Assembly: GCA_977030845.1 (NCBI GenBank) | Contig: OZ365115.1 | Coordinates: 10,478,001 to 10,542,000 of the forward strand | Direction: 5' to 3' | DNA: 64,000 nt | Source of the DNA: Fimbriosthenelais zetlandica | Lineage: Eukaryota | In this document: piece by piece, positions 23,001 to 41,000 of the stretch | How positions within the stretch are numbered: the stretch's first letter is position 1 | Layout of the letters: every line of letters begins with the position of its first letter | Notes under the pieces: generated by a model | Databases searched by the model: none | What the model was told of the DNA's origin: nothing | Seen by the model: the letters and a program-made list of their open reading frames with translations, nothing else | Position numbers and translations under genes: made by a program

Positions 23001-26000
23001 TGGAATTGAAAGCCATCTTCCACCGTGTCACTCCTTGTATTACCTTGATGTCTGATTCTATTTTTGGTGTGTACATTTAATAAACACTTGTTTCTCCTTG
23101 TTTTGTGTTCATCTTTCTCCAGGCTCGTGGATGAGGCCCCGCACAAATCCCATGATCCCTTGCTCTCCCGTAACCATAGTAATGGCCTAGGGTAATGATA
23201 ACAAAATGTCACGGGTTAATTATAATAATGTACTTACACCATGCCTATCATTTTAAAAACATCAATCTAACCCTTTCAAGACTGCTGAAAAGATTTAAAA
23301 TATCCAAAAGTTTTTGGAGGAAGATGCTTAGAAAGTGAAGTTCTGATAGTTCTTGCCAGCATGTTAAGATCGGTTGATCCATTCTTGTGCTACAGTATGA
23401 AATAATCCATATATATCTGAGGTGAAATAACATAGATTTTCTATAAAGTATCAACATTTAACAAGAAGTCCTGAATGGGTTTCCTCTAGTACTTACACAT
23501 CATTCCTTTTGGATTTTCCCTTTTGGGTAAATTTTTCGAGGAATTATACATTTTCCATCTGCAATTTATGTTTTTTCCACAATTGACTAGTTTATAGCGT
23601 GGCTTTGTAAATTATTTTCATTCCCATCTCTGTCTTATACAATATACCCTAGGGTACTTAATTTTGCTTTAGATGTCACATAAAAGCCGAAGAATCCACG
23701 ATCAATTCTTTTAGAGCTCGGAAAGGACTTATCCAATTAGGTGCTTTTATCTGTCCCTCTAAAGGGAAACTGTCAAAAATCGTCCGAACATTTAACAGAA
23801 ATTAATTATGAGATAACGTAGACAGGAAGTACTGTTCCTCTTTTCCCCCACGTACATACCTTGTTTCTGAAACTGATTTGATGTTAGATTTTACTCCTTT
23901 TTTGTTTTGAACCTCAAAGATCTTTGTCTTGATTTTAGGCATGCAGGATAATAATTTTTCATGCTTGAAATGTTTGCTTCTTTTCTAGAGTTTTAATCTA
24001 AGACTAATCCGAATCTAGTGTCTTTTTCATCATTTTCTTAGGTACCTTTTGTAGGTCAAAGGTCCACTGTGCTATGCTTTGATTTCTCTCTTTATTTCTC
24101 TCTTTTATATTAAAAATAATTTCTTTCTAAACTTGCCAATAACTCCTACTCTTTATTTAAACTATTTTATCGCAATATTTTCTTGGTTCTGTATTATCAT
24201 TCATCCTCGATTTTGGTTTGAAATGTTGCCTTCTACCTTTTGCAATATACAAATTACACCTTTGAGATAATTAGGAAGTAATACTGAACAAAATGTGTGT
24301 AATAAAATTCCCTTCTAGTCCAGAGCCTTGTACTTTTCACAACCTCTGAAATTTTTAACCAAAATCGAAGATATAAGAATTATAAAGATAGCCATTTAAA
24401 GATTTGAAGGTAACTTTTTTGCCTAGGGTTTAAATTCAGTTGCCATTATTTATTAACTTGAAATAATTCATATTGCATTTTATCTATCAAATCTACTCTT
24501 ATGGTATAAATTTCACCAGTTGCCAGTCATAGCATGGCTTGATTAAGTTTACTACTAGCATAAGAGCTTATTCTGCAACGCTAACTGATTTAGAAGGTCA
24601 TCACATATAACTTAGGTTCACTGCACAAGAACAGTCTTTTCCTTGGATTCAGATATACCTTCTTTTTCTAGTGAATGAAACAAAATCCTCATAAAATGAC
24701 TTTGGCCCACTGTGTCAATAATAGTACTCGTGAACGAGGGATGAATCCAAGGAAAATCCTGCCATGGATCTATGTCCTACTGACCATGTGTGGGTCTGTG
24801 AGGGGAAGCTGGGGGTATCCTCACTAACCGCTTGTTGAGTGCCGGGTTATGTGGCTGTATTTTGGGTTAGATTATTTATTAACATTATCTCGTCATGTTC
24901 TTCCAGGCTGGGTGACCTGGATGACCTCCACGCCGCCCTGGAGGAAGTGACGCAGAGCGTTAAGAGCCTGATTGAGATGTACTGCCGGACCTTCCACACC
25001 GACTTCCGCTTCGAGTCTGCTGCCAATGTGGTCAGGGGTGAGTGAAACTGTCTAAGCAATCTAGGCTCTCACCTGTCGATGTAATAATGCCATTACCTCA
25101 AGACTATGATGGCCCTAATTTTGATTATAAATTTGAACTGTAAAGCTGGATTCTTCATGCTTTGCATTAATATTTTACTTTCACGTGAAAGTTTCTCTTT
25201 GTTACATTAACAAGGCCGATGATGTGGCCCATCAAACACTTCCAGAATAACTTTATAGTCTTATGAATATATAGTTTAATGGAGGAGATGAATTATTTAC
25301 TAATGAGCAAAATCATGTTGATAGGAGATTTTAACCTAGATGAACATAGTAGGCCTAAACGTAAGGACATAGGTTTTTTCTCTCGAAATATATTACCTGA
25401 ATTAGATGTTGGTCTGGGGCTCACTTTAGGTGAAAAAACGTGCTTGGGAGTTAGAAGAGGGGATTTGGTTTGAAAGAGAAAAATTATGACCTTGTTGGGA
25501 TTCGAACCCATGTTCTTGTACTACTCTAAATGGCACCTTACAATATACAAGTAAGGGAGTTAGAATAAATAAGCAGTTGGAAAAAAAGCGAAAACGCGGA
25601 ACATGGCAGGAATCGAAGCTAGTTTGACATGCCCCTCATATTGAGAGTTCATCTCTTTAACCATTCGGCCACTGACTGCTTGGATCTGTTGGTGTTCAAC
25701 AAATTGTGGTACATGAGAAGCGACGGTGAAAAGGAAAATATATTTAATATCAATTCATAATTTAAAACTTTTAAAAACTACCGAATGTATCAGCTGAATG
25801 TGTCTGGTCAGTAGAATAATCAACCTCCGTGGTTGGGGAGGTTCTGGAAATATTACCATTTGGTTTACTACCTCTAACGGCTGTTCTCGTTGGCCCAGTG
25901 GTCAAGGGCGCTGGTAGTCTGATGTAAGTTTTAACAGACTCGTGGGTTCGAATCCCCACAACAGCCATGGTAGTGGTCCCGTCTGTAAGTTTCAAGTGAA

Positions 26001-38000: not shown

Positions 38001-41000
38001 ACCACACACACACTCACCTCAGTAATTTCCAATACCCATCACCCTATTCGTAGCGTTATTAAATATTTCTACCACTATTTCCCATCTGTCATCTTACACC
38101 CTCCAAACAAAATTTAAGTTTAAAATATAAATAAATTTTTTTTTTGGTGAGGTAGTCTTAGTCAACCGGATCCATTCACCCTGGCATATCAACCCTGGCA
38201 AGGCTACACACTTGATAACCAACTGATCACTGTGGCGAATTGCTCCATGGCCGTACACACATATGATCAGTGCAAGTGTTCCACCTTTACGGATTGAACG
38301 CGGGCCCACGCAAATCAAGCTTTGATCAGAACGTGGGAGACTTCACCAGTCTTTCACTTGAAACTTACAGACGGGACCACTACCATGGCTGTTGTGGGGA
38401 TTCGAACCCACGAGTCTGTTAAAACTTACATCAGACTACCAGCGCCCTTGACCACTGGGCTAACGAGAACAGCCGTTAGAGGTAGTAAACCAAATGGTAA
38501 TATTTCCAGAACCTCCCCAACCACGGAGGTTGATTATTCTACTGACCAGACACATTCAGCTGATACATTCGGTAGTTTTTAAAAGTTTTAAATTATGAAT
38601 TGATATTAAATATATTTTCCTTTTCACCGTCGCTTCTCATGTACCACAATTTGTTGAACACCAACAGATCCAAGCAGTCAGTGGCCGAATGGTTAAAGAG
38701 ATGAACTCTCAATACGAGGGGCATGTCAAACTAGCTTCGATTCCTGCCATGTTCCGCGTTTTCGCTTTTTTTCCAACTGCTTATTTATTCTAACTCCCTT
38801 ACTTGTATATTGTAAGGTGCCATTTAGAGTAGTACAAGAACATGGGTTCGAATCCCAACAAGGTCATAATTTTTCTCTTTCAAACCAAATCCCCTCTTCT
38901 AACTCCCAAGCACGTTTTTTCACCTAAAGTGAGCCCCAGACCAACATCTAATTCAGGTAATATATTTCGAGAGAAAAAACCTATGTCCTTACGTTTAGGC
39001 CTACTATGTTCATCTAGGTTAAAATCTCCTATCAACATGATTTTGCTCATTAGTAAATAATTCATCTCCATTAAACTATATATTCATAAGACTATAAAGT
39101 TATTCTGGAAGTGTTTGATGGGCCACATCATCAGCCTTGTTAAAATATTGATCGGTTGGTATGCAGTGACTGCCCCCATCAGTTGATTAGCATAATCATG
39201 TCATTTTATTTGGTAACAACCAAGTTTAATTCATGAATGTCACCAGCAAGTAGGCCATATATTATGTACATAGATATATAACAAATAGATATACAAAAAC
39301 AATTTAATAACCTAACATTATTCACTCATTAGATGATAATAATATAATTTTAAAATTTTAATATCATCTCGGGATGATATATATTTCAGATAAATTACCG
39401 TAATGCCCATAAAGCAATTAGATATGAATACAGATGGTGTCATGTTATTTTGTCTATACCTGTCCATATATATAGGATCTGTTTCTCTTTATATATACAT
39501 ACATGTAGGCAGATGTATTACTTTCTGGACATTGGGTTAGTTTGGTGAGTTTGACTCTTGTTTACACAAAATTTAAACTAACCCAATGTAGGCATCCTTC
39601 AAAACAAAACTCACCATACTTACACAACATCACTTAGAGCCATACCATGTCTGTCACAAAATGACATAAGAATCTTGAATGCATTGATCGTGACATTGAG
39701 GCGTATTGGTGCACCTGTCGTACCATGTCCTCATGTTCTGATAGCTCTGTCATTGTGAGAGATTCTGCTGTTTACTTAACTCTCCTCCTGGGAGAATATG
39801 TTCTGGTGAAGCCATCAGGCAATGTCTGCACTAAAAGCTGCCGTTCATGGCACGTTTCCGTTCAGCTCGGGGGTTATACCAGTAAGATGTGTTTGTTTCC
39901 ATTTTAGGGATTCCTCTGCAGTGTTTTCCTTCTCCCATGAGAAAGCTTTTAGCAGTAATGCGTCTTAGACACGACTCCTTGCTTTTATCATAATTGACCA
40001 ACAGTGTGATTGGCGATTTCTTATGGAAATATCTTATGTTTTCTCACCTATGAGGGATAAGTGTGCTGGAAAATATTGCGCTGTATTTATGACGCCAACC
40101 AACATTTTTTAGCCTATAGAAAAATAGTGGTATAGCTCTATATCCTATTCCAAGCATTTTAACATTTGTTTTAATCACTCATTGCAGTATAAGATCACGG
40201 CCCTGTATAGATACATTATACCACAATCATATTTTGGGTGAATCACATTGCTAATCATTGGGGAATTCTTGTTCGTGAAATTAAAAACGTTTTTATTGAA
40301 TTTGTATGTGAAGAGGTGACAGATGGTGATGTACACAATAGAATTGTAAAGTAGGTTTCCACCTGTGGCTAGACTATTCAGCGAAGTCTTGCCTATTGAA
40401 CAGCCGCTAGGGAAATTATGAACTTCCATTCAGATTTAAACAATTTCAATTACAACATGAAACCATTTCGGGCTGTTTAAACAATTCAGGTTTTTATTGT
40501 AAAAAGGTTACCTTTTTAAATAAGAATTTTAAAATTTTTCAACGAACAAACTAATCCAGTATGAAGCACATTCTGTACTAACTTCTTTAACCAAAACGGA
40601 GATGATAGAATCCAAACGGTAATAGTAACAAGCCGTGTAAGTGATGGCTGGAGTGAGTGAGAATGGCAGAATTGCCTGTGAAGCCATAGCCTTCCTCCTG
40701 TCTGCCTTGGTCAAGGCCCTCCCCTCGGTACTGTCTTTTACCCTCGGGTGTGTTGAAGTGGGTCTGGGGTGGTACACTACAGTTATAAGGCGGCTTACTG
40801 TAGGTGCTCCGTGTATGCATGTATGGTTTCATCATCTTATTCTGACAAATGGCTACCTTGGGATCCACGCACAAAATAAATGCTGAGAAGGCACTGCAAA
40901 AAGAATAAATTGCATATATAATATTGATGAAAGGCATTTTATACATGTATGGCACTTTTGAGACATTGACACTTGAGTTTTTCTCATAGAATCGTGTATA

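Follow-up and report, generated by a model that had tools for sequence, protein, structure and literature searches.

Within the window, a stretch of 64,000 nt, two long repeats in opposite orientation interrupt the introns of a forward-strand gene. The sequence between the repeats matches PI3K_C2 and PI3Ka, pieces further downstream match PI3_PI4_kinase, PX and C2, and the best solved relative is PI3K-C2 alpha. The host gene is a class II PI3K in which the repeats enclose the PI3K_C2 and helical-domain exons, a context confirmed in outline. Exon 9 (24907-25037, + strand; exon numbers follow an earlier note on this DNA) has the donor GGG/gtgagt, leaves in phase 1 and gave no informative match among solved structures. 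The block coding for the PI3K_C2 and PIK helical domains (27442-29801, + strand) is divided by short introns of 61-340 nt. The earlier note counted nine exons here (exons 10-18); eight are clearly recognisable, though nine-exon GT-AG models do exist, in which the exact boundaries of the fourth and fifth exons of the block (13 and 14) are predictions. The models span 1145-1175 nt, a range that includes the single length of 1175 nt given previously. All of them are 2 mod 3, enter in phase 1 and leave in phase 0, in agreement with the change from phase 1 to phase 0 that had been predicted for a junction of exon 9 to exon 19. The exon order around the repeats is intact.

In a repeat search and a gapped alignment, arm A (25207-27386, 2180 nt) proved reverse-complementary to arm B (36974-39143, 2170 nt) at 99.5% identity: 2155 positions match, 11 are mismatched, and 5 indels account for a further 18 nt. 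The near-identity of these 2.2-kb arms and the 9587 nt that separate them are as the earlier note had described, and the pair is the sole long inverted repeat within the 64-kb window. Its end-points, reported as identical, are so for the repeat unit itself, which alignment of 30 other copies places at 25209-27386 and 36974-39141, whereas the two bases furthest out in either arm (25207-25208 and 39142-39143) belong to the flanks and match by chance. So delimited, arm A is a full-length element copy of 2178 nt on the - strand, antisense to the gene in the HINE orientation proposed below; it fills most of intron 9 (2178 of 2404 nt) and ends, as previously noted, 55 nt before a good acceptor (ctttacag/AG at 27442). 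Arm B is a full-length copy of 2168 nt on the + strand (36974-39141) and lies in the ~19.6-kb intron 18, where 7.2 kb separate it from the exon 18 donor upstream. The duplex predicted for the two arms has 2157 bp (-4176 kcal/mol) and a longest perfect helix of 555 bp.

Both arms are full-length copies of a dispersed, non-coding transposon of ~2.18 kb that is present in roughly 350-410 copies. In the 447-Mb genome, a 42-mer from the hairpin end occurs 348 times and a 40-mer from the other end 409 times (reversed controls, 0), and a search with arm A recovered 38 or more full-length copies, spread over many contigs and 96-100% identical to it (1579 candidates at first look). Most copies are ~2.18 kb long; pairing of end motifs on contig C1 yielded nothing but variants of 2.0-4.6 kb, cases in tandem or truncated, and a single 13.4-kb pair that has no Rep match, and the end motif was not found in metagenome and viral contig collections. 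The ends of the 30 other copies coincide to the base with those of the arms, between unrelated flanks. In the 31-copy alignment each copy lies 1-8 substitutions from the consensus (mean 4.7, 0.22%; 5 in arm A and 7 in arm B), values that understate the diversity of the family because the 30 compared copies are those most similar to arm A. The family is very young and probably still mobile.

All 31 copies carry TT...TT at their two ends on one strand, and every copy is bounded by AACAAGG...GTAATAA or, on the other strand, TTATTAC...CCTTGTT. Exact 11-nt subterminal inverted repeats (ACTTCCAGAAT and ATTCTGGAAGT) stand at distances of 5 nt and 29 nt from the two ends, against a chance expectation of 4e-4. 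In arm B, ACTTCCAGAAT (36979-36989), preceded by TTATT, forms most of the 5' half of a terminal hairpin with a 16-bp stem and a 4-nt loop (36980-37015, + strand), whose DNA fold of -14.7 kcal/mol (z -5.55) was equalled by 0 of 200 shuffles; the same hairpin in arm A (27345-27380, - strand) stands 62-97 nt upstream of the exon 10 acceptor. The right repeat ATTCTGGAAGT occupies 39102-39112 (+ strand) in arm B, where a weak stem-loop and ...CCTTGTT follow, and 25238-25248 (- strand) in arm A, where it reads ACTTCCAGAAT on the + strand. The stem at this right end is only 5 bp (TGATG...CATCA) and its fold (-3.6 kcal/mol, z = 0.18) is no better than those of shuffles. Inside the element, a degenerate tRNA-like module with a long variable arm (25879-25966, + strand) scores 27 bits with the tRNA-Sec model, below the gathering score, and a second T-arm-like motif lies in the opposite orientation at 25492-25510. 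Neither ARAGORN nor Rfam at its gathering threshold detected RNA genes in the arms, and a relaxed Rfam search of them returned nothing more than a tRNA-like match below threshold. Pfam recognised none of nine ORFs (54-94 aa, from either strand of the arms) at E <= 1, on which ground we also rejected an ORF with a GDFN-like motif as an endonuclease remnant. TRF detected no tandem array at the centre of the element, and three copies of a 31-nt motif are dispersed within it.

Target-site duplications were absent from 31 flank pairs and from a single empty site. The latter, obtained by comparing a copy nested in another member (L029) with 30 uninterrupted copies, joins the flanks without duplicated bases and has 5 nt (AATAA / TTATT) common to target and element end; its sequence, CTTAT-TTATT-CTAAC, is compatible with insertion at T^T and also with two neighbouring junctions. 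Flanks are AT-rich, not strongly T-rich next to the TT ends, and target choice is biased, with C at -3 in 19 of 30 copies (p = 3e-7) and also T at -5. The bias at -3 indicates that integration is sequence-guided.

We propose that the element probably belongs to the HLE2/Helentron group of Helitron-like transposons as a non-autonomous member, a HINE comparable to DINE-1 of Drosophila, and that it would have moved by rolling-circle transposition with a RepHel protein supplied in trans. The layout of DINE-1 and other HINEs has been described (Thomas et al. 2014, PMC4067079), as have HLE2 elements (HELIANO, PMC11417382) and HINEs of oysters (PMC7492417), and with these the element shares the lack of coding capacity, the boundary T residues, a high copy number, the absence of target-site duplication (at one empty site) and short subterminal inverted repeats. 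As in DINE-1, an inverted repeat is nested in the 5' subterminal repeat, the 16-bp hairpin including the left repeat, and the same genome holds HLE2 RepHel genes, seen as ORFs with DUF6570 and Helitron_like_N (the HLE2 marker) that are open for 2300-4260 aa. Unlike described HINEs, in which these repeats measure 12-16 nt, the element has repeats of 11 nt, one below that range; its 3' stem-loop is weak, it has dispersed 31-nt motifs in place of a clean central tandem array, and it carries tRNA-like modules. Nor is an autonomous partner linked to it: two Rep loci on contig C1 have no family end within 20 kb, and blastn found nothing between the element and the 3.5-kb Rep loci. The missing partner, the strong hairpin at the would-be 5' end with a weak one at the 3' end, and the flanks that are not strongly T-rich would also suit a transposon outside the HLE2/HINE group, either an unclassified one that makes no target-site duplication (Crypton-like, or another HUH or tyrosine-recombinase type) or an atypical HLE1. 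We consider this unlikely, because TT...TT ends, subterminal repeats, a nested 5' inverted repeat and the absence of target-site duplication jointly fit DINE-1/HINE (PMC4067079), intact HLE2 RepHel ORFs are present in the genome, and the canonical marks of HLE1 (5' TC, 3' CTRR, insertion at A^T) are absent. A canonical Helitron (HLE1) was itself rejected, since no copy has TC or CTRR and the flanking bases vary; a TIR DNA transposon or MITE, since the extreme termini are not complementary and target-site duplication is lacking; and a tRNA-derived SINE, since the tRNA-like modules are internal and degenerate and the element has a fixed 3' end, no tail and no target-site duplication. With its clean boundaries, nested empty site and measurable target bias, this young family is useful for studying HLE2 integration in an invertebrate.

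Three accounts of how the two arms came to face each other were weighed. In the 31-copy alignment they have no derived substitution or indel in common, and in the tree arm A pairs with a copy on contig C13 (L030) and arm B with one on contig C11 (L029); forcing the arms together as sisters costs 23 lnL units (AU test, p = 0.04). Since no derived variant is held in common and the closer relatives sit on other contigs, the arms are independent insertions. Contig C1 has 6 adjacent copy pairs less than 20 kb apart, 3 of them inverted, and chance would give about 5 such pairs genome-wide, half of them inverted. We therefore hold it very probable that one transposon family inserted here twice, independently and very recently, and that the two copies took up opposite orientations by chance, one in an intron 9 that previously measured ~225 nt and the other in the long intron 18 of the PI3K gene. 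The 99.5% identity of the arms would then reflect the youth of the whole family, with no local process involved. Their closeness (9.6 kb), inversion and like end-points might instead suggest that they were born together by local inverted duplication of a single resident element, through fold-back repair or template switching; this is barely credible, given that homology halts exactly at the canonical ends of the family on both sides with no flank co-duplicated, that the arms lack a common private variant and that their nearest neighbours in the tree lie on other contigs, the sister constraint being rejected. High-copy, 99.8%-identical repeats are also a classic source of misassembly, yet the notion that one arm is a copy misplaced or duplicated by the assembler is equally hard to credit: 11 sites and 5 indels set the arms apart, their subfamily variants are not the same, each is short (2.2 kb) and sits between unique flanks inside a multi-megabase contig, and the surrounding exons keep their order. 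The description of the locus as a "built-in" giant hairpin does not survive these comparisons, the high identity being family-wide and similar inverted pairs occurring elsewhere. What looked special is an expected by-product of a recent transposon burst, and such a burst is the default explanation to exclude before function is inferred from long intronic inverted repeats.

An ordinary arrangement of this kind might nonetheless promote circular RNA. Reverse-complementary repeats lie in both introns flanking the exons, as is expected of a repeat-driven circRNA locus, and if both arms were present in one pre-mRNA they could form the 2157-bp duplex and loop out exons 10-18. Such a duplex may favour back-splicing, skipping, editing or dicing. 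Back-splicing from 29801 to 27442, a frameshifting exon 9-to-19 skip, editing or siRNA production, and inversion by NAHR are mechanistically plausible predictions from published mechanisms, and any such RNA would most likely be a by-product and not a selected function. That the pair is a selected regulatory device, making an exon 10-18 circRNA, tuning PI3K-C2 by skipping or supplying an siRNA hairpin against the family, we regard as very improbable. The short distance from arm A to the exon 10 acceptor, the near-perfect duplex that is possible, the requirement for inverted DINE-1 (DNAREP1_DM) copies in making the laccase2 circRNA of Drosophila (PMC4617980) and the ADAR/ADAT-type deaminase loci present in the genome speak in its favour. 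Against this, the two copies, which inserted independently, are no older than the rest of the family (0.2-0.3% from the consensus), so that selection has had little time to act; inverted pairs of this kind are about as frequent as chance predicts; arm B is far from the exon 18 donor; intron 9 splicing could precede transcription of arm B by minutes; and most circRNAs associated with young TEs are by-products (PMC8516420).

The closest parallel is in Drosophila, where inverted copies of DNAREP1_DM (DINE-1, a Helentron-derived HINE) flank exon 2 of laccase2, and also occur at PlexA, driving back-splicing (Kramer et al. 2015, PMC4617980). There, as here, non-autonomous Helitron-like copies in opposite orientation occupy the two introns that flank internal exons of a coding gene, one of them very near the upstream acceptor, and the arrangement is species-specific and young. 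The PI3K arms are 2.2 kb long at 99.5% identity, in contrast to about 100-270 nt at 69-75% there; they enclose eight or nine exons and not one; their downstream arm is 7.2 kb from the donor; and their circRNA is a prediction. With near-perfect arms of 2.2 kb, one 55 nt from an acceptor and the other 7 kb from the donor, the PI3K locus is a natural test case for the effects of arm length, identity and distance on back-splicing. Inverted Alu pairs (IRAlus) that flank human circRNA exons, and the young-TE circRNAs of mammals (Gruhl et al. 2021, PMC8516420), are likewise chance pairs of young, reverse-complementary interspersed repeats in flanking introns, and any circRNAs that result are read as by-products of splicing. 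Alu is a retroposed SINE, whereas the element here would be a DNA rolling-circle element, and the PI3K arms are some seven times longer and far more similar.

A further reading accepts the chance origin of the pair and supposes that it now works as a hairpin locus whose arms pair on transcription of PI3K-C2, giving an abundant exon 10-18 circRNA and/or dsRNA processed by Dicer or ADAR, with small RNAs acting in trans on the other ~400 copies; we think this very improbable. Mu killer of maize and the hpRNA loci of Drosophila are contiguous inverted duplications that are transcribed as one short unit. They resemble the PI3K pair in consisting of inverted transposon sequence from which, if transcribed, a long hairpin RNA could feed RNAi against the family, and differ from it in that a loop of 9.6 kb with exons lies between the PI3K arms and that small RNAs are here a prediction. 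If this reading were true, a housekeeping lipid-kinase gene would double as a natural "Mu killer"-like silencer of a currently active Helentron-type family, the PI3K-C2 locus would also be prone to inversion, with a polymorphic allele, and many other family copies would presumably lie in the introns of other genes.

The earlier note had raised a composite transposon able to carry the C2/helical exons, which we rejected on orientation: the copies lie on opposite strands with their hairpin ends facing each other, and a rolling-circle (Helitron-like) transposon, which the element looks like, needs both ends on one strand. If the hairpin end is the 5' end, each copy faces away from the exons; if the polarity is the reverse, read-through from one or the other copy could reach the exon block, where the second copy would be on the wrong strand for termination. 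The PI3K locus is suited to checking whether such pairs are polymorphic for insertion or inversion in the population.

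The inverted repeat in this class II PI3K gene is real and of ordinary origin. It matches the earlier note's description: a repeat search recovered five collinear inverted blocks linking 25207-27386 (arm A, intron 9 in that note's numbering) with 36974-39143 (arm B, intron 18), and the window holds no further long inverted repeat. When arm A (2180 nt) is aligned, gaps allowed, to reverse-complemented arm B (2170 nt), 2155 positions match and 11 mismatch, and 5 indels add up to 18 nt; 9587 nt separate the arms. Both arms belong to a dispersed family numbering roughly 350-410 copies, as established by a copy search, end-motif counts, and common ends with unrelated flanks, and it is near certain that they are transposon copies. 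Searching arm A against its own genome (447 Mb, 79 contigs) gave 1579 first-look candidates, of which 40 were scored; at least 38 of these are full-length, spread over many contigs at 96-100% identity. With ≤2 mismatches allowed, the genome contains 348 instances of the 42-nt hairpin end and 409 of the 40-nt opposite end, against 0 for reversed control patterns of both motifs. Thirty retrieved copies have precisely the terminal bases of the arms, with unrelated flanks beyond, so that the arm end-points proposed earlier match the family ends except for the outer 2 nt, which are chance flank identity. The end motif is absent from metagenome and viral collections, and the family member is apparently new and undescribed. 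Paired ends on contig C1 cluster at 2171, 2189, and 2213 nt, with minority variants of 2.9-4.6 kb and one pair spanning 13.4 kb (G000:C1:10038956-10052355). These long pairs, near which no Rep match was found, may be longer relatives, copies with nested insertions, or captured DNA.

The arms were inserted separately, their 99.5% identity being that of a whole young family, since a 31-copy alignment contains no derived substitution or indel common to both and a maximum-likelihood tree pairs each arm with a copy on another contig (arm A with locus L030 on C13, arm B with the nested copy of locus L029 on C11). Arm A has variants in common with L030, L004, and L003; for arm B, the copies with common variants are L029 and L023. 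A tree constrained to join the arms as sisters is worse by 23 log-likelihood units (AU p = 0.04). Copies in the alignment carry 1-8 substitutions each relative to the consensus (mean 4.7, 0.22%; 5 in arm A, 7 in arm B), a range that understates family diversity, as the copies compared are the best matches to arm A. Close inverted pairs are not exceptional: six neighboring pairs within 20 kb occur among 80 listed copies on C1, three of them inverted, and chance alone predicts about five pairs closer than 20 kb genome-wide for ~350 copies, half of them inverted. Elsewhere, two copies 14.6 kb apart, L011 (G000:C11:5093533-5098714) and L012 (G000:C11:5078921-5084102), have identical element sequence and nearly identical flanks (300 nt compared on each side, 100% identity on one and 99.7% on the other), and represent a recent segmental duplication including the transposon rather than two insertions.

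None of nine ORFs tested on both strands of the element matched Pfam, and neither ARAGORN nor Rfam at gathering threshold reported an RNA gene. A relaxed search found, below Rfam threshold, a degenerate tRNA-like module at 25879-25966 (+ strand), which has a long variable arm and A-box and B-box-like motifs; a T-arm motif in the opposite orientation lies at 25492-25510 (- strand). Further degenerate modules lie at about 25590-25680 and 26040-26065. The modules occur in both orientations and may be pieces of tRNAs or SINEs that the element captured. On the + strand of arm B, the layout reads TT-ATT-[ACTTCCAGAAT]GAGAAGTTAACTTCTC[GTTCTGGAAG]...[ATTCTGGAAGT]GTTTGATGGGCCACATCATCGGCCTTG-TT, with T residues terminating the element on both sides. 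Its extreme ends have no inverted repeats; its subterminal inverted repeats are exact and 11 nt long (chance expectation 4e-4). A 16-bp hairpin (-14.7 kcal/mol as DNA, z = -5.55) arises where the left repeat pairs with an inverted repeat beside it, and only a weak 5-bp stem-loop lies 3' of the right repeat (z = 0.18). No target-site duplication was found in 31 flank pairs.

These features make it probable that the element belongs to the HLE2/HINE class, its closest family. The same layout is known from HINEs such as DINE-1, non-autonomous elements partnered with Helentrons (PMC4067079), and the element is compatible with HLE2 elements generally, which carry short inverted repeats and insert between T and T without duplication (PMC11417382). 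The marks of a canonical Helitron (HLE1), namely a 5' TC, a 3' CTRR, and A^T insertion, are all absent. The genome contains 30 Helitron_like_N loci, several of them open for 2300-4260 aa and combining this domain with DUF6570, proposed as an HLE2 marker by the HELIANO authors (PMC11417382). Four examined loci are of this HLE2 type: L034 (G000:C11:28271076-28274672), L035 (C27:6892998-6896594), L038 (C40:656810-660403), and L042 (C30:1901958-1905551). A further HLE2 RepHel locus lies at C30:1063525. Two other loci look HLE1-like; L031, the one examined of the two top-scoring loci (L031/L032), joins Helitron_like_N to PIF1 without DUF6570. Several Rep loci sit on the small contigs C30, C31, and C40. 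No autonomous partner could be tied to the family, and no family end was found near the Rep loci of C1.

Locus L029 (G000:C11:47923022-47928196) holds one copy inserted into another at position ~360, and shows that new copies of the family were inserting when older ones were already present. It also provides a natural empty-site comparison: the sequence is ...GTTAG-AATAA-ATAAGCAG... in uninterrupted copies and ...GTTAG[AACAAGG...GTAATAA]ATAAGCAG... where occupied, without target-site duplication at this one empty site compared. The target's TTATT (other strand) coincides with the first five element bases, which leaves three possible cuts, T^T among them. In the flank upstream of the hairpin end, C occupies -3 in 19/30 copies (p = 3e-7) and T occupies -5 in 19/30 (p = 3e-4), with A at -3 in none of the 30, a bias that shows integration to be, judging by these flanks, sequence-guided. 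The frequent target motif, TTC(N)(N)|TTATTAC, is similar to TTCC, the core of the subterminal repeat in the element itself.

The host gene is a class II PI3K, encoded on the + strand: translation of the DNA between the arms gives matches to PI3K_C2 and the PIK helical domain, pieces further downstream match PI3/PI4-kinase, PX, and C2 domains, and the best solved relative is PI3K-C2 alpha. Exon 9 (24907-25037, + strand) ends in phase 1, and exon 10 begins on the same strand at 27442, where the acceptor sits 55 nt past the end of arm A, as noted before; the insertion thus spared room for a branch point and polypyrimidine tract. Because 2178 of the 2404 nt of intron 9 (25038-27441) are transposon, the intron would have measured about 225 nt before insertion; its neighbors measure 61-340 nt. 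Arm B is located 7.2 kb inside intron 18, an intron of roughly 19.6 kb that also contains, at 48354-49097, a 46-bp unit repeated in tandem about 16 times. Open nine-exon GT-AG models of 27442-29801 total 1145-1175 nt and are all 2 mod 3, so the frameshift predicted for an exon 9->19 skip holds; the nine-exon model behind the proposed 1175-nt circRNA of exons 10-18 is possible, with its exact length uncertain within that range.

Both near-identical 2.2-kb intronic repeats fall, inverted, in one transcription unit, and their duplex, if formed, is computed at 2157 base pairs and about -4176 kcal/mol, with a longest perfect helix of 555 bp. Pairing of inverted intronic repeats favors back-splicing, for which about 40-100 nt can suffice, and in Drosophila laccase2 and PlexA the repeats responsible are DNAREP1_DM copies (PMC4617980), the same kind of element as the arms; the DINE-1 pair at laccase2 is the closest known case. 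Since such repeats promote back-splicing in published work, it is plausible that base-paired arms could yield a circRNA and some exon skipping here. A strong splicing effect is disfavored: intron 9 could be gone long before transcription arrives at arm B, 9.6 kb downstream of arm A, and a long stretch separates arm B from the exon 18 donor. Because both insertions share the youth of the family as a whole, a by-product is the most likely status of any RNA made; young-TE-associated circRNAs in mammals have likewise been argued to be by-products (PMC8516420). The locus is a new example of two known kinds, a probable HINE/HLE2 family member and a repeat-flanked exon block. What makes it of interest is the young HLE2-type family, together with the natural experiment that the locus offers on repeat-driven back-splicing.

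The earlier suggestion of a composite transposon carrying the exons is not supported, as the copies lie on opposite strands with hairpin ends facing and a rolling-circle element needs both ends on one strand. With the polarity proposed here, each copy is directed away from the exons; the opposite polarity would permit one-sided read-through capture at most. Editing or dicing of the arms, also predicted, would need duplex formation, and ADAR/ADAT-type deaminase loci are present in the genome. Inversion by homologous recombination between the arms, which would break the gene, is possible in principle.
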